A stretch of 64,000 bases of DNA from Macrostomum lignano (lineage: Eukaryota), in NCBI GenBank assembly GCA_002269645.1, contig NIVC01001888.1:124001-188000 (forward strand), given 5' to 3'. The notes below the pieces were generated by a model. The model made no database searches. It had not been told where the DNA came from and was given only the letters and a program-made list of their open reading frames with translations. Each line of letters starts with the position of its first letter. The first letter of the stretch is position 1. Shown piece after piece: positions 2,303 to 47,795 of this stretch. The position numbers and the translations under genes were made by a program.

Positions 2303-3613
2303 CGAGGAGTGATCAAAAAGTTCTGCAAGTGACCTCACAACTCAGTGTTACAGCAGCCGAGGCGTCAAATCAGTGTCACATTCCCTCAAAGTACTTTCCA
2401 CCACCATCTATGCACCATCGCAATGCCTATGCACCATGTCTGAAAGCAGTCGTGGTACTCCGAAGTTGGTATACCCTGTAGAGCTGAATTTACCGCTTGG
2501 GCAAGCTCTTGTATGTGTTAAAACGGCCTCGCAGAAATGACGGATTTGATCCTCGGGAACAGCCAAAAGTTGCATGGTGCTAGATCTGGATGGATGGGGC
2601 AGCAGCTGGACCCCCTGCTGCTCCAGGTACGCCATGGTTGAGGCCGCTCTGTGCGGTGCCGCATTGTCATGGACTGGTGCAGCAGGAGTCGAGGTCCATG
2701 TCTGGTTCGCGCACGTTCCCGCCGCTCCTGCAGCACGCCTGGCAGAACAGTGTCTGTGTAGTACCTGGCAGTCACTGTGGCACCCGCTGGAAGGATGTTC
2801 ACCGATACAACACCCTGAGAGTTGAAAAAATGATGAATATCCGCTTCCGACTGCGGAATCCGGTCTTCAGCACCTTGGGCCTCGGGCTCATCTTCTGCTA
2901 GCCAGACCATGTTGGACTGCTTATCCTTCATGGTAAAAGAAGGAGATCCAACATTCGTCTCCTGTGATGACATCCGACAGTCGTCGTGGGCCGTGAGGGT
3001 CAAACATTTGCACCCACAAGCGACAGATCTCTGCTTGCTGCTCCGGAGTGAGAAGATGGGGTACTCACCGAGCGCAGGTCTTTGTGCGGCCTAGTTGCTC
3101 ATGCATGATGTAATGAGCACTTCCATAGCTGACACCAAGCTCATTGGCAAGGAATCTCAGCATAATGCTCCAATCCTCACGAATTATTGCATCGGCATGG
3201 GCCACAACATCTTCGGTCACGGATGTCCGGGGTCGGCCAGAACTCGGTTCATCGTTAAAGCTGTCCCGGCCTTCCAAGAAATGGCGCAGCCAGCGGGCAA
3301 CCGTGTCAAATGATGGAGCAGAGTCAGCTAAAACATTCACCAGATCGGTATGAATCTCAGTCACTTTGCAACCAAGTTGCATGCACAAAGATATAGAAGC
3401 GAACACTGTCTTTATGATGTTTCCATCAGCTACTGAAAACACATGGAAAATATATGGCTGTGAAATTTGACTGGAGCACATTTGGAAGCCAAAATTGCAT
3501 ATAGCTAAATATAGCAAACAGATATAGCCGCATATGTGTAAGTTTTTGGCTTTTGCCGATTCTATAACTAAGAGCTATAACAAAAGGTTGCAAAACTTTT
3601 TGATCACCCCTCG
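2303..3613 (-). mobile_element. Full-length (1.31 kb) inactive mariner (Tc1/mariner DD34D type) DNA transposon
   Basis: 26-bp TIRs CGAGGAGTGATCAAAAAGTTCTGCAA / TTGCAAAACTTTTTGATCACCCCTCG (2 mismatches), TA TSDs at 2301-2302 and 3614-3615. Minus-strand transposase fragments: HTH region, GRPRT, AR*VPHLL (WVPHLL with TGA), VITGDECW, HDNA, PDLAPCNFWLFP. Stop and frameshifts present. Confidence 0.95.
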
Positions 3614-4663
3614 TATAGAATTGGACCAGCGCAATCAGATTCAATAACAATAGACACAGTACGAATGCTCGCGTTTGCGAAAGCACTGTTTAATAACAGC
3701 GGGAGTAAGAGCTCTAAAGTAGCTCACCATAAAACTGATGGATAAATATGATTAAATGAAGGCGGGATAAAAATCCTGCAATGTTGGCCCAATTTAAGGC
3801 ACAGCACAAAAAATTAACGCGTCAGGAATCAGAACTTCGATCTGCCATCCTAGAAGACTCAAGGAGTAGCTAGTTCAGATTTCAATGGGATACTTTGGCC
3901 GTATGATTAAATAAAGTGAGAATTTGCTCAGCAGTTTTTGCTTAAACTCTAAGTGAGGGAAGTCTTCATATAACTGAGTCTATCGACCTGAAGCTCAATA
4001 TTTTTGGTCGACTAGAGACTATAGTTTCTACTTGAGCATTGATTGAGAAAAGATGATTGTTTTTGGCAAAAGTTTGAGCGAATGCTCACTTATATTCATC
4101 CGGCCAAATGAGTACAGCATGCACCATTAACAAAAAAGGTCGAAGCACAAAATCAGGCACTTTTCTATTGAAAAGTTTGAGAGGCTGTTGCTAGTTTCTT
4201 TTTAAAATTTTAATACAGGTTGAAATCAGAAATTTAAGGCTCGGTCACACCGCTATCAAATGCAGTCACGCATTTGAACAAACTTCTAATAGAATTTCGA
4301 GTATAGCTAGTATCTGGCAAAAACATCTGACCCGTGGCACTTCCTGACTTCCAGTACTTCATAAGACCGAATTACACAGCACCGAAAAGGCATAAAAACC
4401 TTAAAAGCAGAGTCCTTCATAAGATCTTTTGATGGGGCTTATAACCATGTACAAGCATGCTGAAGCATGATGGAGTTTATTGCAAGAATTTCAATTACGT
4501 TTATATTTTGATCGCATGGATCGAGGATGCTGCGTTTTGATTCTGTTGTCGTGGTGAGATTCTGGTCTTATGAAAAGTGTCAACGACGTTTGACAGCCTC
4601 AATTTGAATAGCTACCACTCTGGCAGCCAGCCATTTGACTGCCAAAAACGATTATAACTTAAC

Positions 4664-5307: not shown

Positions 5308-6610
5308 CTAATAGAGCTTCCCATTGTTTTCACCATCATCAGTTTTGTCGGCACCGGGATCTGATCCATGTCCGACAGTGTTGGACAGACGACGGGACCT
5401 GCGAAACACGTCGCTTCGCAGTAGGATGACAAAGAGGGCCGGATTGATGAGGTTCATGATGCACATTGCGCCGCCTAGCAGGCACAAGTAGGCGGTGTCT
5501 ATGCGGCTACGCTCGGCCACTATGCCGTAGGTGATGCGAGCTAAGCAGTAGCCGCGGCACAGCAAAAATGTGGCCAGATTAATCAGCGCATTTAACCGAT
5601 AGACTGGAGCCGTGAATGAGACGCGCAGCATTTGCATCAGTTTGCGCAGGTGAAGAAAAATTGAATTCACCTCGGTGAGCAAAGCCACAGCTGTGTAGCC
5701 AATGAACATCCGATTAGATAAGTTGTAGACAAATGTTGATATCACCTGTGAGTGTAGAAATGTGTTTATATTGATCTTTATCTATAGTAGCTTATGTCAT
5801 ACACCTATATCAATATAGATTTAGTCAATAATTAATTATTCTTTGTTAAAACAGTCAAACTGCTAAGTTTATTGTGCCTAAGATACTAAAAAGTTGCTTT
5901 CAATGGGGTAAAAATTTGCATTCTATAATGAGATCCCATTAAAAATGATAACAGTCTAAGCTTATACTTACAGCAATATGATGAAGACTTAGCTCCCATT
6001 CCTTGAGCAACTTTCCTTGAATTAGGAGGTCCATAAAGTCGTAGAAAAAGTATCCTAGAAATATATTTGTGAAGAAGAAATGCATATTTCTTAGATCAAA
6101 AATTTTAGTAATAGAAGTATAAATGAAAATATTCAAACCTGTTGATATGGCAACCATATAGTATGTAAATGGAGATATATGGTTTATCAAATCCTGCCAC
6201 ATCTCAGGATACAAGTAGAAACTACAATTAATAAAGAAATAGTGAGAGCAGACACTACTTAATATAAAAAACTTGTCTTTATGTTTTATGTTAATAAATC
6301 AGGATAATATTACATGTTATTTAAACACCCTCTTTAAAAGATCAATAAGAACCAATAATACTTACCAAGAAAGGTCCCATATGCCAATTATTAGAGCATG
6401 AATCCACGATAGAAGAAGATTTTTCCATTTCCATAACTCCTCTTGATTTTTCGCTCGATGTACAATGATTCTTGGGGGTCCAATCACGGTTAAAATTTGA
6501 TTTAGTAATCCGAAAATTGCAATAGTAAATAAAGCGGCACAAAATCCTCCCTTCACAGAAACTACACCAGCTTCGTTAGGAAAAGCATATTTGTAGAGTT
6601 CATTTTTCAT
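5308..6610 (-). CDS. TLC (TRAM/LAG1/CLN8) domain membrane protein, TLCD1/2-like; 4 exons (6610-6366, 6221-6139, 6054-5972, 5745-5308), 282 aa
   Basis: All three introns are GT-AG and phase-compatible (849 nt total). Motifs SWIHALI, GYFFYD, LHHIA and LLTEVNSIFLHLRKL are typical of the TLC domain. Confidence 0.85.
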
Positions 6611-7599
6611 CTGAACTACTCAAGAGAACACAAAGTCTATAAATAACTAGCTAATGCTAGAGCCAAACCGTAAGGCGTTGGGTTGTTACGTGAGCGTGGC
6701 AACATTAAAGTTTATCTTTGTAATTCTCCAAGTTAAAATTGTGAAGTTATACATTTAAAACGGAAATAACAACATTTTCGTCAGAATTCAAGATATATTC
6801 ATATAATGCAACAAGAGAAAATACAGCTTTTTACTTAATATAAATTTATTATTTAGAACTTTCCCAGTATTTTTATCGCAAAACACTTTGTAATTGTAAC
6901 AGAAACTTATAGTGCAAATAAGTCGTAAAAACCAATGCAACATTGTCCGAGCCCGAGAGCTTGCTTATACGAGCTATTCATCTTAAGAACAACTTGAAAT
7001 CGTTCATAGTGGTCATTGATTCGTCTACGAAGTGAAAATATCAGGTAATACATATTCAAAATGCCTATATAATTCACAACAAAATTTAATATTACATGTA
7101 CGCGCTCGTATAAATTTAGAACCCAAGTGTACGTATTCTTTAAATCAAAACATGCATGGACAACTGAATTTGTATAGTAGCTATTAGACTTATAATTCAG
7201 CTGGTCCATGGATGAAACTACATGTGTACAAATGTATACACATAAGAACTGTAAACATGTACTGTAAATTCACGAGGTCTTTCGCGGGTACGAGATAATC
7301 TTCGCGGGCAGCATATGCAGCAGTTGAAGCCAGGTTCCGGATAAGCAATTAAGATTATACATGTACATGTAAAGCTATAAATTTTACTATAAAACCAACA
7401 TATACTGATGTACATGTTAAGTATAGCTAGTAGGTACCTGATACCTTAAAGCACGAAAACTACTATGTATTTTCTGTTAATAGATTCTATATACTAATTA
7501 GTTAAGACCAAACTCCTTGCTTAAAAAATCAATTTAATAAGTAGTAAATTTATCAATAAGGTTTTATCTATCTTTCATAAGAGCCCGAGTTGTCAAGTT

Positions 7600-7810
7600 T
7601 AAAAGATCGGCACGTACGTTTCCGCTCTGACTTGCACTGACTGCACGTGAGCGACAGGGCTGACCAACTTAAAAATATTACATTAACAAAAAGTGCAACT
7701 ACCTACAAAATACAGCTGTTTGACCTGGGCTGGGTGACTGGGATTGGTGCTGTTAATAGAGATTGATTCGCGTGTAAGACAATCACCTTAGCTTTGTTTG
7801 CACTGCCCAC
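7600..7810 (-). promoter_or_regulatory. Diverged paralog of the peptide-gene upstream region
   Basis: Reverse complement aligns by eye to 14210-14430: GCAGTGCAAACAAAG...AAGGTGATTGTCTTACACGC, CACCAATCCCAGT.ACCCAGCCCA.GTCAAACAG, CACGTG, ATCGGCACGT..TTCCGCTC. Confidence 0.6.
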
Positions 7811-8137
7811 AAGTATTAACGGCCTTGGATCGAGCTGGGTTGCTCCATCAACACAATGCGTATTCGTTAGGGGTGCTTAATTGTATTGGATTATCTGCCG
7901 GGAGGAGTGCGATTCTCAAGTTGTGGTGAAGTGATCCTCAGTTTGGAGCAGTGCTTATTTGACATTTATTTGACTGCCAATCAATGGAATGTAGCTGGAT
8001 CTGTAACTGGATGATTAATTTTTTGCCTTCTCATTGATTTCTACTTCAGAATATAAAAAAAGTGTTGGGAGAGTTATATATGTTGAAAATGCCAGTGCTT
8101 TGGTTTTGATCGACCGACTATCGGAAACACCAGCCGA

Positions 8138-8750
8138 GATCAGAAGCACCGGAGATAAGAAACGCAGAAGATCAGAAACACCGGAGATAAGAAACGCAGG
8201 AGATCAGAAACACCGGAGATAAGAAACGCAGGAGATCAGAAACACCGGAGATAAGAAACGCAGAAGATCAGAAGCACCGGAGATAAGAAACGCAGGAGAT
8301 CAGAAGCACCGGAGATAAGAAACGCAGAAGATCAGAAACACCGGAGATAAGAAACGCAGGAGATCAGAAACACCGGAGATAAGAAACGCAGAAGATCAGA
8401 AACACCGGAGATAAGAAACGCAGAAGATCAGAAACACCGGAGATAAGAAACGCAGGAGATCAGAAACACCGGAGATAAGAAACGCAGAAGATCAGAAACA
8501 CCGGAGATAAGAAACGCAGAAGATCAGAAACACCGGAGATAAGAAACGCAGGAGATCAGAAACACCGGAGATAAGAAACGCAGGAGATCAGAAACACCGG
8601 AGATAAGAAACGCAGAAGATCAGAAGCACCGGAGATAAGAAACGCAGGAGATCAGAAGCACCGCGGAGATAAGAAACGCAGGAGATCAGAAACACTGGAG
8701 ATAAGAAACGCAGGCGATCAGAAACACCGGGAGATCAGAAACACCGGAAA
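8138..8750. repeat. 32-bp minisatellite (GATCAGAAACACCGGAGATAAGAAACGCAG(A/G)A), about 19 copies
   Basis: Tandem units read directly. Confidence 0.95.
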
Positions 8751-9205
8751 CATTGAAGATCGTTTTCAGTATTGCCTGTGTAGATTTCTATGTATATTTT
8801 ATCTTCGGAAACTTGTTCACCAACCGCGGACTAAGCATTTCGACAAATTGCAAGCCGCTTCCATCAAGCTTGCCAAATTCTTCGAATGCAACGTCTTTCT
8901 ACGTTGATAGTTTCACATGCCAATCTCAAAACCCCAAACAAAATATCAATTATTACATTAAAAGCATGATGTTGTTGATTTCGATTTTCCATTAGTCTCT
9001 CATCTATAGCTACATGTACATGTAGCTTCAATGCTACAAAAGAATGTTGAGTCCGGAACGGTCATGCAGAGGTCGGCATGCCTTCATTTTGAATAAATAG
9101 GAGCTCCAATTGTTAAGCTTAAGCGTGTATTTGTGCTGCGTATTCGGGCACTTGGGCAGTCAGATCAGAGTCAAAGCCGGGGTTCTCCGAGCTCAGCTGC
9201 TCAGC

Positions 9206-9448
9206 TCAGAGCACCGCCTTGGCGACCTTGCCGGCCACGCGGATGGCCTTCCTCCAGCGGAAGCGCCTCCTCCTGCGCCACTTCTCGGCCGGCTGCAGGG
9301 CGCCGTCCTCGGACATGTCGGACTCCTCCAGGTTGGCCAGGGCCTCCAGCGCGTTCATCGCATCGGCGTCCTCGGCCTGCTCCGCGCTGGGAGCGGCGGC
9401 GGCCAGGGCCGTGCAGAGCAGAAGTCCGAGAGCGAGTTGCCACTTCAT
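9206..9448 (-). CDS. Secreted cationic peptide precursor (putative antimicrobial/cytolytic peptide), copy 1
   Basis: 80 aa, intronless. Hydrophobic signal peptide about 1-18, acidic propiece 19-55 (11 D/E), C-terminal KWRRRRRFRWRKAIRVAGKVAKAVL (8 R + 4 K). Strong GC3 bias. Confidence 0.85.
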   Translation of the reverse strand: MKWQLALGLLLCTALAAAAPSAEQAEDADAMNALEALANLEESDMSEDGALQPAEKWRRRRRFRWRKAIRVAGKVAKAVL

Positions 9449-10194
9449 GGTTGAGTTTGTTGCTGTGCGAGCTGATGAAGCTGAGAGTCTGTGACTACTA
9501 TTCCTGTTAATTGATCTCAGCCAGCTGCTTTAGGGGACGCATTTATGCAGCCGAAATCGGCACGTTTTTCCGCTCCGACTGCCTTCTGTTTGGACTGCTG
9601 GGCTGGCACGTGACAAGGGCTGACCTCTCCCAGATCGCACACTCTCTTTTCAATCATTTGAAACAAAGTTTCTGGTGGCAAATAGAACCGAATTCCTGTA
9701 TAATTACGAGTAATAAGGTTCTTGAACAAGCAACTTAATCTGTAAATTTACACTAGAGTTTTTTCGTTTAGTGTTACGTTTGTTTGAGCGGCTGTTGCAC
9801 TCTGGGGGTCTTGCTACTGCAAACACGGCCCTATTTGAATAGTCATCGAATTCACATTCTATTGAAATGCGCAATTTAATAGCTCTTGTAGCTTATGAGC
9901 ATCAGGAACTCGCGATGAAGAGAGCTGAGCTTCACGATGGAGAATCCATGATGAATACATTGAAATGATCGATAAAGCATAGGCGTAACAACATCCAAGA
10001 CTCTGGGGTTCCGTTTTAATTATTACTGATGATTGAATTCAGCATTTCTGATGTGAAATCCTTATACTTTTGTTTAATAAAAGATTTGTATAGAGAAGCC
10101 GTGTCTGAATTTCAAGGTTATCCACAAAGTCCCATATTAAATATGACTGATAACTGAGAATCATTTCCCCCAACAGCTAGATAATCATGCATTG

Positions 10195-10350
10195 CTCTTC
10201 AACTGAGAATCACTGCTCACAACTGCTCACAACTGAGCATCACTGCTTACACGTGAGAATCACTGCTCACAACTGAGAATCACTGCTCACAACTGAGAAT
10301 CACTGCTCACAACTGAGAATCACTGCTCACAACTGAGAATCACTGCTCTT
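10195..10350. repeat. 20-bp satellite CACTGCTCACAACTGAG(A/C)AT, short array (about 7 units)
   Basis: Tandem units read directly. Confidence 0.95.
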
Positions 10351-10405
10351 CACAGCTTCGGTACTCGTTAATAAGTATTAAGCATTTACCCTACCTGAGT
10401 CTTAA

Positions 10406-12561
10406 CCCTCCAAAGACTGATGGCACACGCCAGGCGTGCCATGGGTCTCATTTAACCATATACTGAGAATACATGTCTATGGCCTAGATAGTTTAGCATA
10501 AATATGACTTTTCGACATCCCCATAAGTTACGGATGGCATGCTGTGCGTACCATGTTTTTCGCAATTTTTCAACTATATTTCACTGCAAGTACAGGATAG
10601 ATAAGAATTCTTTAAAAACTTTAAAAAAGGACAACAACAGAACTAAGAACAGTTAGGTAAACAATATTTAATGCATCGATGAGGCATTTAGGAGGAGCGT
10701 TTTGAATTTCGTATTCTGAACGTAATAAGTTTTACACCGTACCACCAGTGCAACTACTGTGCTGCTGCAGTGTGCCAATTCTGAAGCACGGGACAGCACA
10801 CAGCCCGGGCTCTCCTGGGCAACCAGCGCATTCGAACACCGTTCTCTTGGCCACACCAAATTATTTTGTAAGTGCAATAAAAGTGCAATATGAATCGATA
10901 TGAAAACTGGCTTAAATACTAAGTTGCAAAAATTGACACCATTGCTGTAGCAGACTCTGCATCGCTTTGTCGGCCTTGCATTGGCATCTGTCGGCGGCAG
11001 CTTCGATGGCGCGTGCTGTGAGACGGCCCTGCGCTTCGATGTATTCAGACGTTTGCCCCGGCCTGTCTGCTCCATGAGAGTGCGGATCGCAGCTATCAAA
11101 AATTCAACGAATTTGATATCGCTTCCTTCTTGGCAGTTGCAGACCCAGGCACTGCGGACCAACTGCAGCAAAACGTGGAACCCGAGCTTCTGGTGCCATC
11201 TGTAGGTCTGTAGGCTCCCCCCACTGTAAGGCTGCAGTGCTGCATCAAGGCGATCAACGCCTCCCATGTTCTTATTGTACTGCAGCACCGAATTCGGCTT
11301 TAAAACTGACTCCTCTGCTCGGCCTTGGATCACTCGCCTCACTTCCGTGATTTCAGCAACACCGTGCGTGACTGACGGGTTGCACGGGCAGCAATTTCAG
11401 CTCATTCGGCACACCTCGATTGGGCCTCACCGTCCCAGTCAGTCAGTAAAGTACTGAGTTCCAGCAGAAACTGCGCCAGACGGAGCGATGTGAAACAGCT
11501 GTCACAGAAGACCTTGTGCCCCAGGTCCAGCAAATTTTTACTCAATTCAAGGACGATCTTCTCGCTCATCGACAAATTCCCGCAGTTTAATCCATCTCCA
11601 AACTTGTCGTTATCCTGCTTAGCAGCATGTACATGAAAGTTCCACAGAAAACATGTCAAAGCTTCTGTGTCCAGCAGTACACCTTGATGCCGAATCTGGC
11701 ACGCTTGTTGGGCATGAACGGCCGGAAAATGAGCCTGCCCTTGTACATGACCAGTTCTTCATCGACAGACACCTCTTGACTTGGGCTGTAATTTGCCTTG
11801 ACTTGGGCTGTAATTTGCTTGGCAAATATCGCGGGCAATGTTAAGAAACGGTCGAATCTTTTTCAAGGAGTCCTTGTTGGTTGACGGTGGTGCAGTCGTA
11901 AAATCGAAGGAATGATAAAATCTGCACAAACCGATCCCTTCCAAGGCAATGTTCTTTCTGCAAGTATTCGCCGCCGTAGAAGTCTCCCGTGGACCAGTAC
12001 ATGTGCATTTCGGGCTTCTTCACAAGACCCATGTACAGAACGATTGCTAGAGACTTCTTCACCTCATTGTCGGTACACGCTCTCCAAGTTGATAGCAAAT
12101 TGGGAAGAGCTCCGTCCTGAGCTTCAGCTGTTGAAGCTCCATGTCAGCTCGGGCGTTGGTCCAGATGCGAATGGCAGACACCAGATCAGCGGTGAGAAAG
12201 TGCTGCAGATAGAATTGCACCTGGGCCATTTTATATGTACCTTCAGGAGCTTGTGCTTGAATGTCCGGGTTCAGGCCAGACACAGCGAGGAATTCTCGTG
12301 GTTAAGCACAGCGAAACGTACCATTCCACAATCCAGTGATTAAGCAGCTGTGTCAGCGGGAAAAAAGTCGCGCTGAAGAGGATCTCAAGGCAACTGCTGC
12401 AAAATGCGGAGGATGGCATCGGAAAATGATGGAGCTACCTCCACCGGTGCATTACTGGCAACATATTCTCCTAGCTTGGTAAATTTCGAAACTGACTATT
12501 CAGCACGGTGGCTCCTTTGTTGCGTTGCGTTGCCTTGTTAGATGCTAGAAGATGCACGATG
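10406..12561 (-). mobile_element. piggyBac transposon, 5'-truncated, pseudogenised transposase (copy 1)
   Basis: TTAA (10402-10405) followed by CCCTCCAAAGACTGATGGCACACGCCAGGCGTGCC terminus. Transposase fragments carry SVDE, FCDSCFTS, NKNMGGVD (DDD triad) and a C-terminal RCRVC. Several frameshifts. Confidence 0.92.
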
Positions 12562-14105
12562 ACTGCTCACAACTGAGCATCAATGCTCACAACTGAGCAT
12601 CACTGCTCACAACTGAGCATCACTGCTCACAACTGAGCATCACTGCTCACAACTGAGCATCAATGCTCACACCTGAGAATCACTGCTCACAACTGAGCAT
12701 CACTGCTCACAACTGAGCATCACTGCTCACAACTGAGAATCACTGCTCACAACTGAGAATCACTGCTCACAACTGAGCATCACTGCTCACAACTGAGCAT
12801 CACTGCTCACAACTAAGCATCACTGCTCACAACTGAGCATCACTGCTCACAACTGAGAATCACTGCTCACACCTGAGAATCACTGCTCACAACTGAGCAT
12901 CACTGCTCACAACTGAGAATCACTGCTCACAACTGAGAATCACTGCTCACAACTGAGCATCACTGATCACAACTGAACATCACTGATCACAACTGAGCAT
13001 CACTGATCACAACTGAGCATCACTGATCACAACTGAGAATCACTGCTCACAACTGAGCATCACTGCTCACAACTGAGAATCACTGCTCACAACTGAGCAT
13101 CACTGCTCACAACTGAGCATCACTGCTCACACCTGAGAATCACTGCTCACACCTGAGAATCACTGCTCACACCTGAGAATCACTGCTCACACCTGAGAAT
13201 CACTGCTCACACCTGAGAATCACTGCTCACAACTAAGCATCACTGCTCACAACTGAGAATCACTGCTCACAACTGAGCATCACTGCTCACAACTGAGAAT
13301 CACTTCTCACAACTGAGAATCACTGCTCACAACTGAGCATCACTGCTCACACCTGAGAATCACTGCTCACAACTGAGCATCACTGCTCACAACTGAGCAT
13401 CACTGCTCACACCTGAGAATCACTGCTCACACCTGAGAATCACTGCTCACAACTGAGAATCACTGCTCACAACTGAGAATCACTGCTCACAACTGAGAAT
13501 CACTGCTCACAACTAAGCATCACTGCTCACAACTGAGAATCACTGCTCACAACTAAGCATCACTGCTCACAACTGAGAATCACTGCTCACAACTAAGCAT
13601 CACTGCTCACAACTAAGCATCACTGCTCACAACTAAGCATCACTGCTCACACCTGAGAATCACTGCTCACAACTAAGCATCACTGCTCACAACTGAGCAT
13701 CACTGCTCACAACTGAGCATCACTGCTCACACCTGAGAATCACTGCTCACACCTGAGCATCACTGCTCACACCTGAGCATCACTGCTCACACCTGAGAAT
13801 CACTGCTCACACCTGAGCATCACTGCTCACACCTGAGAATCACTGCTCACACCTGAGAATCACTGCTCACACCTGAGCATCACTGCTCACAACTGAGCAT
13901 CACTGCTCACACCTGAGAATCACTGCTCACACCTGAGAATCACTGCTCACAACTGAGAATCACTGCTCACACCTGAGAATCACTGCTGACACCTGAGAAT
14001 CACTGCTCACAACTGAGAATCACTGCTCACAACTGAGAATCACTGCTCACAGCTGAGAATCACTGCTCACAACTGAGCATCACTGCTCACACCTGAGCAT
14101 CACTC
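12562..14105. repeat. 20-bp satellite CACTGCTCACA(A/C)CTGAG(A/C)AT, about 77 units
   Basis: Tandem units read directly. Confidence 0.97.
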
Positions 14106-14371
14106 CTTTCAGCAGATAATCTAGGAGTACTACATGCAATTATAAGCAGCACTAACGACTAGGCGTTCTGTTGATTATGTAGGTCAACACAGCTACAAGG
14201 GTTCATGCTTGAATGCAGTGCAAACAAAGGCTATTAAGGTGATTGTCTTACACGCCAACTCATCCTAACTGAGAGCACCAATCCCAGTGACCCAGCCCAA
14301 GTCAAACAGTATTTCGGAGGCAGTTGCAAGTTTTTGTTGCTGTGATCTTTTTAAGTAGGTAAGTCTGGCGC

Positions 14372-14475
14372 TCACGTGCCAGCCCGGCAGTCCAAACAGA
14401 AGGCAGTCGGAGCGGAAAAACGTGCCGATTTCGGCTGCATAAATGCGTCGCCTAAAGCAGCTGGCTGAGATCAAT
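14372..14475 (+). promoter_or_regulatory. Putative proximal promoter of peptide gene copy 2 (shared with copies 1 and 3)
   Basis: CACGTG E-box at about 14373, GCGGAAAAAC, and TATA-like CATAAAT at about 14438-14444, roughly 95 bp upstream of the ATG. Conserved in all three copies. Confidence 0.45.
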
Positions 14476-14536
14476 TAACAGGAAAAGTAGTCACAGACTC
14501 TCAGCTTCATCAGCTCGCACAGCAACAGACTCAACC

Positions 14537-14779
14537 ATGAAGTGGCAACTCGCTCTCGGACTTCTGCTCTGCACGGCCCTGGCCGCCGCCGCTCCCAGCG
14601 CGGAGCAGGCCGAGGACGCCGATGCGATGAACGCGCTGGAGGCCCTGGCCAACCTGGAGGAGTCCGACATGTCCGAGGACGGCGCCCTGCAGCCGGCCGA
14701 GAAGTGGCGCAGGAGGAGGCGCTTCCGCTGGAGGAAGGCCATCCGCGTGGCCGGCAAGGTCGCCAAGGCGGTGCTCTGA
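14537..14779 (+). CDS. Secreted cationic peptide precursor, copy 2 (in palindrome spacer)
   Basis: 243-bp CDS, same 80-aa translation as copies 1 and 3; nucleotide-identical to copy 3. Confidence 0.85.
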   Translation: MKWQLALGLLLCTALAAAAPSAEQAEDADAMNALEALANLEESDMSEDGALQPAEKWRRRRRFRWRKAIRVAGKVAKAVL

Positions 14780-15015
14780 GCTGAGCAGCTGAGCTCGGAG
14801 AACCCCGGCTTTGACTCTGATCTGACTGCCCAAGTGCCCGAATACGCAGCACAAATACACGCTTAAGCTTAACAATTGGAGCTCCTATTTATTCAAAATG
14901 AAGGCATGCCGACCTCTGCATAACCGTTCCGGACTCAACATTCTTTTGTAGCATTGAGGCTAGCTGGGAATGCAAAACAGAAGCATCATGTTTAGGCTTG
15001 ATTAGATATGAATTT

Positions 15016-16395
15016 GATTCTCAGTTGTGAGCAGTGATGCTCAGTTGTGAGCAGTGATTCTCAGTTGTGAGCAGTGATGCTCAGGTGTGAGCAGTGATGC
15101 TTAGTTGTGAGCAGTGATGCTTAGTTGTGAGCAGTGATGCTTAGTTGTGAGCAGTGATGCTCAGTTGTGAGCAGTGATTCTCAGTTGTGAGCAGTGATGC
15201 TCAGGTGTGAGCAGTGATTCTCAGGTGTGAGCAGTGATTCTCAGGTGTGAGCAGTGATTCTCAGTTGTGAGCAGTGATGCTCAGTTGTGAGCAGTGATTC
15301 TCAGTTGTGAGCAGTGATGCTCAGTTGTGAGCAGTGATTCTCAGTTGTGATCAGTGATGCTCAGTTGTGATCAGTGATGCTCAGTTGTGAGCAGTGATTC
15401 TCAGTTGTGAGCAGTGATTCTCAGTTGTGAGCAGTGATGCTCAGGTGTGAGCAGTGATGCTCAGTTGTGAGCAGTGATGCTCAGTTGTGAGCAGTGATTC
15501 TCAGGTGTGAGCAGTGATTCTCAGTTGTGAGCAGTGATGCTTAGTTGTGAGCAGTGATGCTTAGTTGTGAGCAGTGATTCTCAGTTGTGAGCAGTGATGC
15601 TCAGTTGTGAGCAGTGATTCTCAGTTGTGAGCAGTGATGCTCAGTTGTGAGCAGTGATGCTTAGTTGTGAGCAGTGATGCTTAGTTGTGAGCAGTGATGC
15701 TCAGTTGTGAGCAGTGATGCTCAGTTGTGAGCAGTGATGCTCAGGTGTGAGCAGTGATTCTCAGGTGTGAGCAGTGATTCTCAGGTGTGAGCAGTGATGC
15801 TCAGTTGTGAGCAGTGATTCTCAGGTGTGAGCAGTGATGCTCAGTTGTGAGCAGTGATGCTCAGTTGTGAGCAGTGATTCTCAGTTGTGAGCAGTGATGC
15901 TCAGTTGTGAGCAGTGATTCTCAGTTGTGATCAGTGATGCTCAGTTGTGATCAGTGATGCTCAGTTGTGATCAGTGATGCTCAGTTGTGATCAGTGATGC
16001 TCAGTTGTGAGCAGTGATTCTCAGTTGTGAGCAGTGATTCTCAGTTGTGAGCAGTGATGCTCAGGTGTGAGCAGTGATGCTCAGTTGTGAGCAGTGATGC
16101 TTAGTTGTGAGCAGCGATGCTCAGTTGTGAGCAGTGATGCTTAGTTGTGAGCAGTGATGCTCAGTTGTGAGCAGTGATGCTCAGTTGTGAGCAGTGATTC
16201 TCAGTTGTGAGCAGTGATTCTCAGTTGTGAGCAGTGATGCTCAGTTGTGAGCAGTGATGCTCAGTTGTGAGCAGTGATTCTCAGGTGTGAGCATTGATGC
16301 TCAGTTGTGAGCAGTGATGCTCAGTTGTGAGCAGTGATGCTCAGTTGTGAGCAGTGATGCTCAGTTGTGAGCATTGATGCTCAGTTGTGAGCAGT
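15016..16395. repeat. 20-bp satellite in reverse orientation (CTCAG(T/G)TGTGAGCAGTGAT(G/T)), about 69 units
   Basis: Reverse complement of the 12562-14105 array unit. Confidence 0.97.
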
Positions 16396-18551
16396 CATCG
16401 TGCATCTTCTAGCATCTAACAAGGCAACGCAACGCAACAAAGGAGCCACCGTGCTGAATAGTCAGTTTCGAAATTTACCAAGCTAGGAGAATATGTTGCC
16501 AGTAATGCACCGGTGGAGGTAGCTCCATCATTTTCCGATGCCATCCTCCGCATTTTGCAGCAGTTGCCTTGAGATCCTCTTCAGCGCGACTTTTTTCCCG
16601 CTGACACAGCTGCTTAATCACTGGATTGTGGAATGGTACGTTTCGCTGTGCTTAACCACGAGAATTCCTCGCTGTGTCTGGCCTGAACCCGGACATTCAA
16701 GCACAAGCTCCTGAAGGTACATATAAAATGGCCCAGGTGCAATTCTATCTGCAGCACTTTCTCACCGCTGATCTGGTGTCTGCCATTCGCATCTGGACCA
16801 ACGCCCGAGCTGACATGGAGCTTCAACAGCTGAAGCTCAGGACGGAGCTCTTCCCAATTTGCTATCAACTTGGAGAGCGTGTACCGACAATGAGGTGAAG
16901 AAGTCTCTAGCAATCGTTCTGTACATGGGTCTTGTGAAGAAGCCCGAAATGCACATGTACTGGTCCACGGGAGACTTCTACGGCGGCGAATACTTGCAGA
17001 AAGAACATTGCCTTGGAAGGGATCGGTTTGTGCAGATTTTATCATTCCTTCGATTTTACGACTGCACCACCGTCAACCAACAAGGACTCCTTGAAAAAGA
17101 TTCGACCGTTTCTTAACATTGCCCGCGATATTTGCCAAGCAAATTACAGCCCAAGTCAAGGCAAATTACAGCCCAAGTCAAGAGGTGTCTGTCGATGAAG
17201 AACTGGTCATGTACAAGGGCAGGCTCATTTTCCGGCCGTTCATGCCCAACAAGCGTGCCAGATTCGGCATCAAGGTGTACTGCTGGACACAGAAGCTTTG
17301 ACATGTTTTCTGTGGAACTTTCATGTACATGCTGCTAAGCAGGATAACGACAAGTTTGGAGATGGATTAAACTGCGGGAATTTGTCGATGAGCGAGAAGA
17401 TCGTCCTTGAATTGAGTAAAAATTTGCTGGACCTGGGGCACAAGGTCTTCTGTGACAGCTGTTTCACATCGCTCCGTCTGGCGCAGTTTCTGCTGGAACT
17501 CAGTACTTTACTGACTGACTGGGACGGTGAGGCCCAATCGAGGTGTGCCGAATGAGCTGAAATTGCTGCCCGTGCAACCCGTCAGTCACGCACGGTGTTG
17601 CTGAAATCACGGAAGTGAGGCGAGTGATCCAAGGCCGAGCAGAGGAGTCAGTTTTAAAGCCGAATTCGGTGCTGCAGTACAATAAGAACATGGGAGGCGT
17701 TGATCGCCTTGATGCAGCACTGCAGCCTTACAGTGGGGGGAGCCTACAGACCTACAGATGGCACCAGAAGCTCGGGTTCCACGTTTTGCTGCAGTTGGTC
17801 CGCAGTGCCTGGGTCTGCAACTGCCAAGAAGGAAGCGATATCAAATTCGTTGAATTTTTGATAGCTGCGATCCGCACTCTCATGGAGCAGACAGGCCGGG
17901 GCAAACGTCTGAATACATCGAAGCGCAGGGCCGTCTCACAGCACGCGCCATCGAAGCTGCCGCCGACAGATGCCAATGCAAGGCCGACAAAGCGATGCAG
18001 AGTCTGCTACAGCAATGGTGTCAATTTTTGCAACTTAGTATTTAAGCCAGTTTTCATATCGATTCATATTGCACTTTTATTGCACTTACAAAATAATTTG
18101 GTGTGGCCAAGAGAACGGTGTTCGAATGCGCTGGTTGCCCAGGAGAGCCCGGGCTGTGTGCTGTCCCGTGCTTCAGAATTGGCACACTGCAGCAGCACAG
18201 TAGTTGCACTGGTGGTACGGTGTAAAACTTATTACGTTCAGAATACGAAATTCAAAACGCTCCTCCTAAATGCCTCATCGATGCATTAAATATTGTTTAC
18301 CTAACTGTTCTTAGTTCTGTTGTTGTCCTTTTTTAAAGTTTTTAAAGAATTCTTATCTATCCTGTACTTGCAGTGAAATATAGTTGAAAAATTGCGAAAA
18401 ACATGGTACGCACAGCATGCCATCCGTAACTTATGGGGATGTCGAAAAGTCATATTTATGCTAAACTATCTAGGCCATAGACATGTATTCTCAGTATATG
18501 GTTAAATGAGACCCATGGCACGCCTGGCGTGTGCCATCAGTCTTTGGAGGG
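16396..18551 (+). mobile_element. piggyBac transposon, 5'-truncated, pseudogenised transposase (copy 2)
   Basis: Ends ...CAGTCTTTGGAGGG followed by TTAA (18552-18555). Same DDD motifs as copy 1. A 22-bp tandem duplication (17139-17160 / 17161-17182) causes a frameshift shared with copy 1. Confidence 0.92.
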
Positions 18552-18607
18552 TTAAGACTCAGGTAGGGTAAATGCTTAATACTTATTAACGAGTACCGAA
18601 GCTGTGA

Positions 18608-19062
18608 AGAGCAGTGATTCTCAGTTGTGAGCAGTGATTCTCAGTTGTGAGCAGTGATTCTCAGTTGTGAGCAGTGATTCTCAGTTATGAGCAGTGATTC
18701 TCAGGTGTGAGCAGTGATTCTCAGTTGTGAGCAGTGATGCTCAGTTGTGAGCAGTGATTCTCAGTTGTGAGCAGTGATTCTCAGTTATGAGCAGTGATTC
18801 TCAGGTGTGAGCAGTGATTCTCAGTTGTGAGCAGTGATTCTCAGTTATGAGCAGTGATTCTCAGGTGTGAGCAGTGATTCTCAGTTGTGAGCAGTGATGC
18901 TCAGTTGTGAGCAGTGATTCTCAGTTGTGAGCAGTGATTCTCAGTTGTGAGCAGTGATTCTCAGTTGTGAGCAGTGATTCTCACGTGTAAGCAGTGATTC
19001 TCAGTTGTGAGCAGTGATGCTCAGTTGTGAGCAGTTGTGAGCAGTGATTCTCAGTTGAAGAG
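18608..19062. repeat. 20-bp satellite, reverse orientation, about 22 units
   Basis: Tandem units read directly; mirror of the 10195-10350 array but about 300 bp longer. Confidence 0.95.
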
Positions 19063-19808
19063 CAATGCATGATTATCTAGCTGTTGGGGGAAATGATTCT
19101 CAGTTATCAGTCATATTTAATATGGGACTTTGTGGATAACCTTGAAATTCAGACACGGCTTCTCTATACAAATCTTTTATTAAACAAAAGTATAAGGATT
19201 TCACATCAGAAATGCTGAATTCAATCATCAGTAATAATTAAAACGGAACCCCAGAGTCTTGGATGTTGTTACGCCTATGCTTTATCGATCATTTCAATGT
19301 ATTCATCATGGATTCTCCATCGTGAAGCTCAGCTCTCTTCATCGCGAGTTCCTGATGCTCATAAGCTACAAGAGCTATTAAATTGCGCATTTCAATAGAA
19401 TGTGAATTCGATGACTATTCAAATAGGGCCGTGTTTGCAGTAGCAAGACCCCCAGAGTGCAACAGCCGCTCAAACAAACGTAACACTAAACGAAAAAACT
19501 CTAGTGTAAATTTACAGATTAAGTTGCTTGTTCAAGAACCTTATTACTCGTAATTATACAGGAATTCGGTTCTATTTGCCACCAGAAACTTTGTTTCAAA
19601 TGATTGAAAAGAGAGTGTGCGATCTGGGAGAGGTCAGCCCTTGTCACGTGCCAGCCCAGCAGTCCAAACAGAAGGCAGTCGGAGCGGAAAAACGTGCCGA
19701 TTTCGGCTGCATAAATGCGTCCCCTAAAGCAGCTGGCTGAGATCAATTAACAGGAATAGTAGTCACAGACTCTCAGCTTCATCAGCTCGCACAGCAACAA
19801 ACTCAACC

Positions 19809-20051
19809 ATGAAGTGGCAACTCGCTCTCGGACTTCTGCTCTGCACGGCCCTGGCCGCCGCCGCTCCCAGCGCGGAGCAGGCCGAGGACGCCGATGCGAT
19901 GAACGCGCTGGAGGCCCTGGCCAACCTGGAGGAGTCCGACATGTCCGAGGACGGCGCCCTGCAGCCGGCCGAGAAGTGGCGCAGGAGGAGGCGCTTCCGC
20001 TGGAGGAAGGCCATCCGCGTGGCCGGCAAGGTCGCCAAGGCGGTGCTCTGA
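19809..20051 (+). CDS. Secreted cationic peptide precursor, copy 3
   Basis: Identical 80-aa translation to copies 1 and 2. Confidence 0.85.
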   Translation: MKWQLALGLLLCTALAAAAPSAEQAEDADAMNALEALANLEESDMSEDGALQPAEKWRRRRRFRWRKAIRVAGKVAKAVL

Positions 20052-21132
20052 GCTGAGCAGCTGAGCTCGGAGAACCCCGGCTTTGACTCTGATCTGACTG
20101 CCCAAGTGCCCGAATACGCAGCACAAATACACGCTTAAGCTTAACAATTGGAGCTCCTATTTATTCAAAATGAAGGCATGCCGACCTCTGCATGACCGTT
20201 CCGGACTCAACATTCTTTTGTAGCATTGAGGCTAGCTGGGAATGCAAAACAGAAGCATCATGTTTAGGCTTGATTAGATATGAATTTTTTTGGTGATGAT
20301 TCACAAAGACTAAATATAAAGTTTTTACTGGTGGTTCATCAGTGTACTATACAGTTAGATAATTACATCACAAAAGTTGTGCTCGCAGCCTACTACTGCA
20401 CACGGCTCTGTTAGTAGATACAGTTGGCAAAAGCTTGTGCACAATAATGGGAGAGGTGATATTAACAAATGAGTGACGCACATTTCTAATTATTGATATT
20501 AATGATATAGGCATACAAAATTGGCATTAGGGAAGCATGACGCATACATTTATTAATAAATTCAAAAACCTAGCATTCAAGTAAATTTCTATCGTTCTTG
20601 CGACTGAAGCTTAAAATACACGCAGGAGACAACTGCAACACTTTATTAGATAGTAACAGACAAATTTTCGGTTACATTGTCCTGGAATAACACTGGCTGG
20701 AAACTGGAATAATATAAAAGTACGCACAATCAATCAGCTTAAACGTGCATCATTTTAACTAGCAGTAAGTGTTATTAAATGCTTCTATCCGATTTAAAAT
20801 ATGATTGAGCTCTTTCCCGATGAAATCGCTAAGAAGCGTCCCAGTCACTTGCATCGTCCCAAGAGTTTTTGTCTGCGACTTTGAAACGATGCTGGGGCGA
20901 CAGAGTCGCACTTTATAACAGCTACATTTAGTCTATTTGAGTTAGTGAAAAAGTTAAACGCTAACACTTTTAGACGACTTTTTGGCGACTTTTATTACGA
21001 TGCTAAAACTCTATAGTCGCTATAGTCACTAGCGACTTGTTTGCAATGACTCTTTAGCGATTCTCTATCAAAATTAACTACTACCTAGATACAAAAGTAC
21101 ACGATAAACTTTAATTTAACGGACATTCAGGA

Positions 21133-22738
21133 CTATCCGAGAGGTGCCTGAACAGCCCGCACAATGGACCGCTCGCAGCAGGGACAATGCGGCGGCGGGC
21201 CAGACTGTCTCCTAATAAAATTCGAGCAGATCTCGCACAGGCGGATAGCGTGAGTCTCCACTCGAGCAGCCGCCAATGCGCAGACCGTATCGTACTTGGC
21301 GGTACACACGGGCTGATTGATCCGGCAGAACTGGCACAGATCTAGCAGGCTGAATGCGGGCTCGCGGAAGCGGAGAAACAGGCAGCTGAACTGCGTTGAT
21401 GCCCAGCTGATTGCGCGGACCATTCGGCGGAAGGCGTCGTCCGGGTTGGTCTCGCTTGGCACGATGCCAAACCGGCTAGCGAGAGGGCGCGGGGAGGGGC
21501 CAGGGAGTTTCTTAGAAAAAGTCACTCATGTTTGAGACAGCAGACTTTGGTATGAACCTAGTCTTTGAGAGAGAGTCATCTGCTGGGGTTCGTCTTTAGG
21601 GACGAAGTCATGGATGAGGTCATAGATGAGGTCACGGATAAGATCATAGATGATGCCACGGATAAGATCATAGATGAGGTCACGGATAAGATCATAGATG
21701 ATGCCACGGATAAGATCATAGATGATGCCACGGATAAGATCATAGATGATGCCATGGATAAGATCATAGGTGAGGTCACGGATAAGATCATAGATGATGC
21801 CACGGATAAGATCATAGATGATACCATGGATAAGATCATAGATGATGCCACGGATAAGATCATAGATGATGCCATGGATAAGATCATAGGTGAGGTCACG
21901 GATAAGATCATAGATGAGGTCACGGATAAGATCATAGATGATACCATGGATAAGATCATAGATGATGCCACGGATAAGATCATAGATGATGCCATGGATA
22001 AGATCATAGGTGAGGTCACGGATAAGATCATAGATGATGCCACGGATAAGATCATAGATGATGCCACGGATAAGATCATAGATGAGGTCACGGATAAGAT
22101 CATAGATGATGTCACGGATAAGATCATAGATGAGGTCACGGATAAGATCATAGATGAGGCCACGGATAAGATCATAGATAATGTCATCACAGCCTAAGAA
22201 AGCAGTGTCGCCGCTCTCACCGGTACAGGAACAGCACATCGTCCACAGTGATGTTCTGCCTGCAGCGATGGTCGGAGTGTCGGCTGAAGTGCTCATTCAA
22301 TCTGGCAGCGAATCGCTGGGGCGTGTCGGCTAGCCAGTGCTCGGGGCCGCCAGTCAATCTCATCAGCCGATGCCAGCGCTCTAGCAGGCCAATCAAATCG
22401 TGACAGGTCAGGTCGCCGCCTCTGGCAGATTTGAAAAACTCGAACAGCAGATGAGAGTTGGGATTACTAGCGTTGCCAGGCGGTAACCAGGCTCGCCAGC
22501 CGTCTGGCCCGCGGCAAGTGGGATCGGGGAACAGCTGTCTAGTCGATTGACTGGCGCGCAAGTGGACGTAAAACTCGGCGCTAGTTGCGTCCGGCCGGCC
22601 GGACAAAAAGCTGGCCAGCTCGTCTACTAAGGTGACGCTGTCGGACACGGCGCGGGGTGAGGGCGGAACGGCTAGGGGACTAACAGGATTGCTGACGGAT
22701 GAAGCTCTGCTGCTATCGCGCCCCGCCGCATATTGCAT
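21133..22738 (-). CDS. Candidate two-exon protein (22738-22221, 21475-21133; 286 aa) with C-terminal RING-like Cys cluster
   Basis: Phase-2 donor (TACCG|GTGAGA) and acceptor (CCCTCTCGCTAG|C) join the two ORFs in frame. C-terminus reads CQFC...C...H...CEIC...CPCC. Confidence 0.5.
21605..22185. repeat. 24-bp minisatellite (GATGAGGTCACGGATAAGATCATA variants), about 24 copies, intronic
   Basis: Tandem units read directly; produces the spurious repeat ORFs in the track. Confidence 0.95.

Positions 22739-47715: not shown

Positions 47716-47795
<80 letters not shown>

Follow-up and report, generated by a model that had tools for sequence, protein, structure and literature searches.

Introduction

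The dermaseptin/FSAP precursors of frogs consist of a signal peptide, an acidic propiece that runs to a dibasic site, and a single cationic peptide at the C-terminal end, often with a Gly for amidation. The linear cytolytic venom peptides of spiders and ants (latarcins, cupiennins, pilosulin-like peptides) combine a cationic amphipathic helix with a signal peptide and an acidic propeptide, and a conserved prepro part with hypervariable mature parts is also typical of venom peptides. The arminins and periculins of Hydra are lineage-restricted paralogues that start with a signal peptide; their N-terminal part is anionic, and the C-terminal part, which varies and is strongly cationic, is set free. 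The periculins contain Cys and are expressed in the female germline and the embryo, and we take these two families as leads only. Trematode helminth defence molecules (HDMs) and the cathelicidins are secreted, and their C-terminal amphipathic cationic helix is freed by proteolysis. The myticalins of Mytilus come in Pro/Arg- and aromatic-rich variants with dibasic processing, and in these the cationic peptide stands before an anionic propiece. To our knowledge, and in our searches, there is no earlier description from free-living flatworms of a gene-encoded family of linear peptides of the antimicrobial type. Here we describe a gene of the flatworm Macrostomum lignano, present in three identical copies, and the family to which it belongs, whose products are predicted to be secreted and processed cationic peptides that may act in host defence. 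M. lignano is a transparent model that is transgenic and tractable by RNA interference. The copies lie in a window of 64,000 nt, by which we mean the whole stretch of DNA that was analysed, on contig NIVC01001888.1:124001-188000 of assembly Mlig_3_7, GCA_002269645.1. This placement follows from positions 6206-12448 of the window, which agree at 100% identity with NIVC01001888.1:130206-136448.

The gene, its promoter and its product

The three copies give the same 80-aa protein with its stop codon by translation, MKWQLALGLLLCTALAAAAPSAEQAEDADAMNALEALANLEESDMSEDGALQPAEKWRRRRRFRWRKAIRVAGKVAKAVL*, in agreement with a preliminary description made from the letters alone, which had assigned one protein to the three intervals. 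The DNA of the three coding sequences (CDSs) is also identical, and each open reading frame (ORF) is intronless. The parts of the gene are as follows.

9206..9448, minus strand: CDS of copy 1, same DNA as copy 2; bears the 80-aa GenBank gene model in NIVC01001888.1
14537..14779, plus strand: CDS of copy 2, 80 aa and stop codon, from translation
19809..20051, plus strand: CDS of copy 3, same DNA as copy 2
14537-14593, plus strand: signal peptide of copy 2, aa 1-19, from sequence features
14594-14704, plus strand: acidic propiece of copy 2, aa 20-56, with E55-K56 at its end
14705-14776, plus strand: cationic tail of copy 2, aa 57-80
14708-14722, plus strand: R58-R62 run of copy 2
14723-14776, plus strand: predicted 18-mer of copy 2, FRWRKAIRVAGKVAKAVL
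14414..14444, plus strand: core promoter of copy 2, GGAAAAACGTGCC…GCATAAAT, with an E-box-like ACGTG and a TATA box, 93-123 nt upstream of the ATG
9541..9571, minus strand: core promoter of copy 1, from a pattern match
19686..19716, plus strand: core promoter of copy 3, from a pattern match

The ORF is a real gene, because its frame and architecture are conserved in at least 26 diverged paralogue clusters, its signal peptide is under purifying selection and its TATA promoter is conserved, and because its GC content at third codon positions (GC3) is 0.91 as compared to ~0.47 GC in the flanks, a sharp GC3 island, and GenBank models derived from RNA-seq exist. A stop codon lies in frame upstream of the ATG. 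Six copies of the gene, on three contigs, show only three differences in the CDS, one of them synonymous and the other two in a single codon, where they cause the conservative change V70I. It was also possible to observe that the three antisense frames of the 243-nt ORF (14537-14779, minus strand) have no stop codons, which is a side effect of the GC3 of 0.91; assignment of strand or frame by ORF length alone is therefore unreliable here. Each copy is thus a gene without introns, driven from a TATA promoter, whose product is a secretory prepropeptide of 80 aa.

The diverged paralogues have in common the element GGAAA[A/C]ACGTGCC-N(~12)-GCATAAAT, ~100 nt upstream of the ATG. When the pattern GGAAAMACGTG-N12-16-ATAAAT was searched for in the window there were three matches, one per gene copy, as compared to 0 expected. 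It was found once upstream of each family start in eight of nine other loci (L001-L008), pseudogene starts included, and not at the paralogue of the ninth, L009. This composite promoter, in short GGAAAMACGTG-N14-ATAAAT, is family-specific, as it matches only at family genes, and being compact (~130 bp) it could be used in a reporter. The TATA box at about -100, together with a 501-nt transcript of a paralogue, suggests a small mRNA with ~70 nt of 5' untranslated region (UTR), 270 nt of CDS and 160 nt of 3'UTR.

GenBank also holds longer models of the window gene, PAA68913.1 (127 aa) and PAA73003.1 (129 aa), which we rejected as the true product. Their first ~30 residues (MAFLQRKRLLLRHFSAGCRAPSSDMSDSSR) are an antisense frame of the 80-aa ORF, and this antisense start is joined via a canonical GT-AG intron (…TCCTCCAG/GT … AACAG/GAA) to the 5'UTR of the inverted copy. 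The parts joined are 9206-9448 with 14470-14536 and 19809-20051 with 9449-9515, and the same is seen at L001 1-3206 and L010 3602-8212. The sensible product is the 80-aa ORF, and the 127- and 129-aa chimeras in GenBank should be corrected to 80 aa. If the chimeric junction is supported by RNA-seq, transcripts span the inverted copies and could form hairpin RNA.

The N-terminal end of the protein has K2, a hydrophobic core of 16 residues (mean Kyte-Doolittle 1.97) and small residues before P20. Residues 20-55 contain 11 Asp and Glu and neither Lys nor Arg, which gives a charge of -11, and the tail KWRRRRRFRWRKAIRVAGKVAKAVL has +12; by the boundary counted, the values are -10 to -11 and +11 to +12. 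The layout given in the preliminary description (signal peptide, anionic propiece, cationic tail) thus holds, on sequence features as well as family conservation, and its charge figures of -11 and +12 were reproduced when recomputed. It had also stated that there is no Cys and no amidation Gly. A Cys is present in the signal peptide (C12), and there is none in the propiece or the tail; the protein ends …AKAVL and has no C-terminal amidation signal, though 21 of the 24 distinct family members have one.

The canonical processing site of the family is the invariant K56, preceded by another Lys in the relatives (KK), and in the window gene it has degenerated to E55-K56. Since the KK site is lost, the furin or proprotein convertase-type site RRRRR↓F would be the one most likely used. 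The most plausible product predicted from the sequence is then the 18-mer FRWRKAIRVAGKVAKAVL (+6), and the 24-mer WRRRRRF… (+11) is a less likely alternative. Cleavage in the Arg run, as first proposed, is plausible for this gene with its EK, but atypical for the family. The proposed amphipathic helix applies to the C-terminal 15-18 residues, where the hydrophobic moment (muH) in 11-residue stretches over residues 64-80 is 0.74-0.79, but not to the whole 24-mer, whose amphipathicity is not distinguishable from that of shuffled sequences (p=0.27). The 18-mer has a muH(100 degrees) of 0.55 and a best angle of 105 degrees. It fits the cationic amphipathic mature peptide of the antimicrobial peptide (AMP) class by its charge of +6, with a moment only marginally above shuffles (p=0.075). 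AlphaFold2, run with the family alignment, placed helices at 3-18, 27-44 and 53-79 with a mean confidence (pLDDT) of 61, which makes these helices suggestive only.

The paralogue family

A word-indexed search recovered only the window gene's own cluster. An exhaustive phmmer search of 1.84 billion representatives, and then a profile search of 5.8 billion proteins, gave at least 26 clusters at 90% identity. Every annotated member is a 'hypothetical protein BOX15_Mlig…' of M. lignano. One more member was found on a 929-nt Logan contig from SRR31628392. The contig (SRR31628392_42504, locus L003) encodes at 541-813 a Pro/Arg-rich member (…KK FLRVRLPRVRMPRVRLPRVRLPRLRVRFRWSKK) with the family promoter. 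Among the annotated proteins of M. lignano nothing reaches 90% identity to this member, which could be from another Macrostomum species or an unannotated paralogue. Two candidates were dropped, P0007 (a 497-aa repeat protein of a European Nucleotide Archive contig) as a low-complexity match, and the Sushi-domain part of P0012 as belonging to a fused gene model.

The signal peptide is nearly invariant in the family, M[KR]WQ[LF][AV]LGLLLCAALAVA, beginning MKWQLALGLLLC… and running up to an invariant Pro20, and the window protein (MKWQLALGLLLCTALAAAAP) fits M[KR]WQ[LF][AV]LGLLLC… with Pro20. In alignment A2, P20 is invariant and M1, W3, Q4, L7 and G8-L11 are at least 90% conserved; further on, E26 and K56 are invariant and K55 is conserved in at least 90% of the members. 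The propiece is acidic (…EE.AEAMAALEAL..LDE..MSEE…) up to K56, and probably helical. At the K56 site the window gene and its V70I variant have EK, and every other member has KK or KKK. The tail, on the other hand, differs radically between the paralogues, from 6 to 34 aa in length and from +1 to +17 in charge. The following types were seen.

Short alternating tails: FVRVRVRL-G, IFRVRVHI-G, WLRVRARVRI-G
His-rich tails: GFHVHFH-G, FIHIHF-G, FHLHLP-GK
Pro/Arg-rich tail: FLRVRLPRVRMPRVRLPRVRLPRLRVRFRWSKK
Long Arg/Trp/Tyr-rich tails: WRIRFRRIRIRWRRVYRVVRTAYRIYRHLPFP-GK, WLGRRRRVRIRWRKVLRLVYRIYRHMPL-GK
Two-Cys tail: WRIKSACKIFRRLLHLARKCYAKK-G

The short tails are 6-10 residues, and the short paralogues are beta-amphipathic, with a muH(180 degrees) of 1.1-1.45. 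The C-terminal amidation signal, G, GK or GKR, is found in the 21 of 24 distinct members mentioned above.

The family genes are intronless and clustered in the genome. Locus L004 has five intact paralogues and one fragment in 20 kb, and locus L008 (NIVC01001664.1) has at least three intact paralogues together with truncated or frameshifted pseudogenes, which are listed here.

L008 26217-26354, minus strand: pseudogene
L008 33519-33626, plus strand: pseudogene
L008 35162-35269, plus strand: pseudogene

In these the promoter is intact and the signal peptide is kept for its first 9-13 codons, after which comes a frameshift or unrelated sequence. This implies birth-and-death turnover in the cluster of long-tail genes. 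In the paralogue at L008 10001-10267 the tail starts KK-WLG-RRRR-V…, and cuts at both basic sites would free a Trp-Leu-amide dipeptide and a long cationic peptide.

The preliminary description did not recognise a named family, and our searches are in agreement, as Pfam, PDB, the 5.8-billion and 1.84-billion protein searches and the literature led only to uncharacterised M. lignano proteins. A Pfam scan of the window protein at E<=10 gave only irrelevant sub-threshold matches (TAFII55_N, Phage_coatGP8, DNA_pol3_tau_4), and 21 family members at E<=0.01 gave nothing meaningful. A recurrent match to PF22991 ('Lock_Gag1-like') was rejected as compositional; it covers a 17-residue acidic stretch, gives no individually significant domain, and reaches the cut-off only in P0015, in which the propiece is internally duplicated. 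The PDB held no relevant relative, whether searched by the window sequence or by the family profile. No description of the family turned up in the literature, whether it was searched for gene IDs, for peptide strings or by topic, and the supplements of expression papers have no entry for the gene IDs searched.

It is essentially shown that this is a conserved and transcribed multigene family, so far seen only among annotated proteins of M. lignano and on the one Logan contig, that it encodes secretory prepropeptides which have a basic processing site and mostly an amidation signal as well, and that the mature part is hypervariable and cationic. We are highly confident in calling it a family of processed secreted cationic peptides.

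Evolution of the family

The proportions of nonsynonymous (pN) and synonymous (pS) differences were summed over six phylogenetically independent pairs of paralogues.

Signal peptide: pN 0.060, pS 0.185, pN/pS 0.32
Propiece: pN 0.150, pS 0.244, pN/pS 0.62
Tail: pN 0.341, pS 0.332, pN/pS 1.03

The tail exceeds the prepro part in pN by a factor of about three (0.341 as compared to 0.121, Fisher p=6e-15), and since the many indels were ignored this contrast is understated. In synonymous divergence the tail is ahead by a small margin only (p=0.06). Pairs of very recent origin show a 5-10-fold contrast between tail and prepro part.

The negative charge of the propiece follows the positive charge of the predicted mature peptide (Spearman rho -0.84, n=24) and does so also within the long-tail clade (rho -0.93, n=8, p=7e-4), the points in both cases not being phylogenetically independent; within the short-tail clade the correlation is not significant. 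Such co-variation is the pattern expected if the propiece neutralises a cationic peptide that could damage the animal's own cells. The family evolves as families of host-defence or toxin peptides do, in that its prepro cassette is conserved, its mature part is hypervariable, and the charges of propiece and tail change together.

Expression

The BOX15 models in GenBank come from a genome-guided RNA-seq assembly, and the family is therefore transcribed. Table S11 in Brand et al. 2020 lists an in situ hybridisation (ISH) probe for the 501-nt transcript RNA815_1838.3 with the pattern 'gonads' and Ramm et al. 2019 as the source; the probe is from a screen of transcripts sensitive to the social environment. 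Both primers match L008 perfectly, at 9977-10000 and 10320-10340, and the 364 nt that they delimit equal the length published for the probe. The complete CDS of the paralogue L008:10001-10267 lies within this span. The tail of this paralogue, WLGRRRRVRIRWRKVLRLVYRIYRHMPLGK, is among the fetched relatives the one most like that of the window gene (an Arg run, then RWRK).

In the positional RNA-seq data of Arbore et al. 2015, RNA815_1838.3 has 93 reads in the head, 94 in head+testis, 49 in head+testis+ovary and 176 in the whole worm, and is in class [0,0,0], i.e. not regional. The level is ~3.5 reads per million and is relatively the same in the gonad-free head fragment, where the 93 reads imply that the mRNA is present without gonads. 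Cross-hybridisation of the probe to other family members is probable, as is multi-mapping of the RNA-seq reads. The expression data for this transcript are thus ambiguous as to tissue, and neither confirm nor exclude a role in defence.

A possible role in host defence

The following course of events is conceivable. The N-terminal signal peptide (~aa 1-19), which is seen in the sequence features and conserved in the family, would send the precursor into the endoplasmic reticulum. During transport the 36-aa propiece (-11) may mask the tail (+12) electrostatically, as the charge co-variation of the family suggests. A subtilisin-like proprotein convertase would then cut at basic residues, in the relatives at the invariant KK just before the tail and in the window gene, with its EK, at RRRRR↓F, freeing FRWRKAIRVAGKVAKAVL (+6) or, less likely, the 24-mer (+11). 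The freed peptide may form an amphipathic helix on anionic membranes and permeabilise them, and so act as an antimicrobial or cytolytic effector of host defence. The masking by charge, the cleavage after R62 in the window gene, the membrane activity and the defence role are all what we infer. The sister genes, with (RV)n-amide, Pro/Arg-, Arg/Tyr/Trp- and His-rich tails on one prepro cassette, suggest a diversified effector repertoire. A masked, processed, membrane-active host-defence peptide is the best explanation as a whole, and we give it a probability of about 0.55. That the family as such consists of antimicrobial or cytolytic effectors has an even chance or slightly better.

A number of observations weigh against this explanation. 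The literature search gave no detected peptide, no data on membrane or microbicidal activity, and no infection- or wounding-response data for the family. RNA815_1838.3 is weakly expressed, at the ~3.5 reads per million given above, and the 'gonads' label and its choice as a socially sensitive transcript point at least as much to reproduction as to defence of the surface. A tail pN/pS of ~1 fits relaxed constraint as well as diversifying selection, and KK cleavage and amidation are also a signature of neuropeptides. The window member itself lacks the KK site, having EK instead, as well as the amidation signal of its relatives, so that its processing is the least certain in the family. To this can be added the marginal helical moment of the 18-mer (p=0.075) and the low-confidence AlphaFold2 model (pLDDT 61).

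The 'gonads' pattern brings in another explanation, which is that these are reproduction-related secreted peptides of testes and ovaries, acting in gamete maturation or in sperm-egg or partner interactions and evolving fast under sexual selection, with membrane activity being incidental. The probe over the closest fetched paralogue, and its origin in the screen for social sensitivity, agree with this, as does the lineage-restricted family with its fast-evolving mature part, and genes related to reproduction are known to evolve rapidly in Macrostomum (PMC7336406). Still, the transcript is in class [0,0,0], with 93 normalised reads in the gonad-free head as compared to 94 in head+testis, and the co-variation of charge suggests a peptide that has to be masked because it is toxic. 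Expression in the gonads also fits a defensive provisioning of gametes or eggs. We find a purely reproductive role rather unlikely, and a defence role in gonads or eggs would merge it with host defence.

The presence of the transcript in the head fragment is also what could be expected of neuropeptide or peptide-hormone precursors, in which short amidated products (FVRVRVRL-NH2, GFHVHFH-NH2) act on receptors and the window gene has diverged. The signal peptide, the KK site, the G, GK or GKR with which 21 of 24 members end and the short tails of 6-10 residues, a typical neuropeptide size, are in line with this. The pattern of conservation is the inverse, however. It is the prepro part that is conserved, and the bioactive part is hypervariable: it ranges from 6 to 34 aa and from +1 to +17 in charge, and its chemistry varies too. 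Each precursor holds a single peptide, there are dozens of recent tandem paralogues along with pseudogenes, the charge of the propiece scales with that of the tail, and the window member has neither KK site nor amidation signal, all of which makes signalling peptides quite unlikely.

The architecture and the evolutionary pattern that argue for host defence would be equally expected of cytolytic toxins or deterrents directed at eukaryotic predators, competitors or food organisms and not at bacteria, and the conserved prepro part with hypervariable mature parts resembles that of venom peptides. We know of no venom apparatus in M. lignano, which feeds on diatoms, expression is low and not regionalised, and the very short (RV)n-amide tails are unlikely cytolysins, so toxins of this kind are, in our judgement, very unlikely.

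A non-functional ORF, whether a frame left open by chance in duplicated, GC-rich DNA or a young copy on its way to a pseudogene, is hardly credible, for although all three antisense frames are open too, the 127- and 129-aa models are chimeras, the KK site and amidation signal are lost and the transcript evidence specific to the window gene consists only of assembly-derived GenBank models, the frame, signal peptide, propiece and invariant residues are kept in at least 26 diverged clusters, the signal peptide has a pN/pS of 0.32, the promoter is intact in every window copy, only three CDS differences occur over six copies on three contigs, and the true pseudogenes of the family look otherwise, being truncated or frameshifted.

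A match to a known non-defence protein, such as a neuropeptide or a protamine-like protein, had been named beforehand as an outcome that would tell against defence, and none was found; the tail is hypervariable, unlike the bioactive part of a neuropeptide, and the signal peptide is unlike a protamine. For a protamine-like or sperm nuclear basic protein, a canonical N-terminal signal peptide under purifying selection does not fit, and the amidation signals of the relatives imply passage through the secretory pathway, unlike such nuclear proteins.

A further step can be proposed tentatively, at somewhat less than an even chance: that the family is the first gene-encoded linear host-defence peptide arsenal in a free-living flatworm, in which one taxonomically restricted secretory cassette, made up of the promoter, the signal peptide and an acidic propiece matched in charge, has, through dozens of duplications, come to deliver chemically diverse effectors, a part of them perhaps protecting the germline or the embryos from the gonads or eggs. 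The effector chemistries would be the following.

Ala/Lys amphipathic helix
Arg/Trp/Tyr-rich helices
(RV)n-amide beta-strands
Pro/Arg-rich peptides
His-rich pH-switch peptides

Structure and origin of the locus

The three gene units, of 591-644 bp, are ~99% identical between the window copies. Six variable sites were found among them, all outside the ORF, which by chance has p ~0.04 given the ORF's share of the unit. The units are part of a large inverted structure.

9023..9613, minus strand: gene unit 1, from repeat comparison
14372..15015, plus strand: gene unit 2 with promoter, 5'UTR, CDS and 3' region, at the centre of the inverted structure
19644..20287, plus strand: gene unit 3, from repeat comparison
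9023..13942, no strand: left arm of the inverted repeat, 98-99% complementary to 15015-20234; contains gene copy 1
15015..20234, no strand: right arm of the inverted repeat; contains gene copy 3
10222-10348 and 12562-14104: 20-bp satellite arrays of the left arm
15015-16395 and 18609-19035: 20-bp satellite arrays of the right arm
10668-11342, minus strand, and 17615-18289, plus strand: weak piggyBac-type transposase fragment (PF13843, E=0.013)

The unit of the satellite is ACTGCTCACAACTGAGCATC, with ~77 copies at 12562-14104 and ~69 at 15015-16395 (94% match). These two large arrays flank the central gene copy in opposite orientation, and the smaller arrays are near the outer copies. Copy 3 repeats copy 2 in the same orientation, and copy 1 is inverted. 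The transposase fragment is a 224-aa ORF duplicated in both arms, which matches weakly the C-terminal end of the PF13843 profile and is probably a transposon remnant.

A head-to-head pair of the same gene was also seen on NIVC01001046.1 (L010), at 3602-3844(-) and 8001-8243(+), and a similar arrangement on NIVC01001363.1 is implied by the same chimeric gene model there, which makes it unlikely that the palindrome is an assembly artefact of one contig. The locus is real and recently duplicated, and the genome is neopolyploid. Recent segmental duplications, both inverted and direct, gave rise to the three copies within a region rich in satellites and transposons. The identical copies are the result of one duplication event and thus count as one observation, not three independent ones. 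The preliminary description had noted that genes of this architecture are often amplified in copy number. The copies are real, but being recent (~99% identical) and in an inverted arrangement of this kind their number alone means little, and the meaningful amplification is that of the paralogue family in the genome. A tblastn search of the window found no further diverged copies of the gene.

The other features of the window are listed here.

2518-3517, minus strand: degraded mariner/Mos1-type transposase (HTH_48, Transposase_1)
8136-8742: minisatellite, 32-bp array, by Tandem Repeats Finder
21612-22183: minisatellite, 24-bp array, by Tandem Repeats Finder
27102-29834, minus strand: LINE-type retrotransposon with endonuclease (PF03372) and reverse transcriptase (PF00078) ORFs, a block of 65% GC
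30951-31708, 34501-35896, 37304-38014, 47157-48854 and 62559-63254: minisatellites inferred from repetitive multi-frame ORFs of 150-460 aa on both strands
36474-37079, minus strand: exon with the start of a Prp19 WD40 domain (PF24814, E=6e-21)
39812-41884, plus strand: ORF of 690 aa with Pkinase (E=2e-53), then an RCC1-like beta-propeller (RLD E=9e-90)

The 690-aa ORF is NEK8/NEK9-like in architecture and apparently intronless over this stretch. The Prp19 exon is consistent with the PRPF19 homologue Mlig003338.g1 / Mlig024774.g6 in the supplement of PMC5816591. The ORFs within the minisatellite arrays are not to be read as genes.

Comparison with known systems

All homology tests that were run were negative, and the family is therefore not a member of any of the analogue families compared here. 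The frog precursors have in common with it the conserved prepro cassette and the hypervariable mature peptides over many paralogues, but PF03032 (the FSAP/dermaseptin signal peptide and propeptide) did not match the window protein at E<=10 or the 21 family members at E<=0.01. The flatworm genes are intronless and carry alpha-helical, beta-alternating, Pro/Arg-rich and His-rich tails on one cassette, which also sets them apart. The spider and ant venom peptides are cut at a basic residue that follows acidic ones, and the context in the window protein is similar, …PAEK↓W. No homology to spider or ant venom peptides was found in the Pfam scan or the 1.84-billion search, and, unlike these, the family is expressed at a low level, with no venom gland context known for M. 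lignano.

The same exhaustive search of 1.84 billion representatives recovered no Hydra proteins, and the tails of the M. lignano family are mostly free of Cys, unlike the periculins. As a lead only, the germline expression of the periculins would reconcile the 'gonads' pattern with a role in defence. The family differs from the HDMs, which are conserved single-domain proteins, in its hypervariable tail, and from the cathelicidins, which have a cathelin-like prodomain of ~100 aa with four conserved Cys, in that the window propiece is 36 aa, has no Cys and has no Pfam match. Neither trematode nor cathelicidin proteins were recovered in the Pfam scan or the 1.84-billion search, and the window protein had no match to the models of cecropins, pleurocidins or other AMP families in Pfam.

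The flatworm neuropeptide prohormones also have a signal peptide, KK cleavage and a C-terminal Gly for amidation, as do 21 of the 24 members here, with the window gene (EK, no Gly) as a deviation. Unlike in these prohormones, the mature part is the least conserved (pN/pS 1.03 as compared to 0.32 for the signal peptide), and there is a single C-terminal peptide with a net charge of up to +17. Nematode or tunicate peptides are further analogues with a reversed domain order, and the order is reversed in the myticalins as well, which show no sequence match. The likeness to the myticalins is in the multigenic, linear, cationic peptides, found in a marine invertebrate by bioinformatic discovery (PMC5577615).

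The family offers about two dozen natural templates for peptide biophysics (very short amidated (RV)n, His-rich, Pro/Arg-rich and helical). In M. lignano it can be asked directly in vivo how a secretory cassette gains varied cationic tails and what the peptides do, be it control of the microbiome, protection of the eggs or reproduction. Compared with the known systems, this appears from sequence comparison to be a new and non-homologous family of a known architectural kind, in which the unusual trait is that one and the same cassette carries tails predicted to be helical, beta-alternating, Pro/Arg-rich and His-rich.

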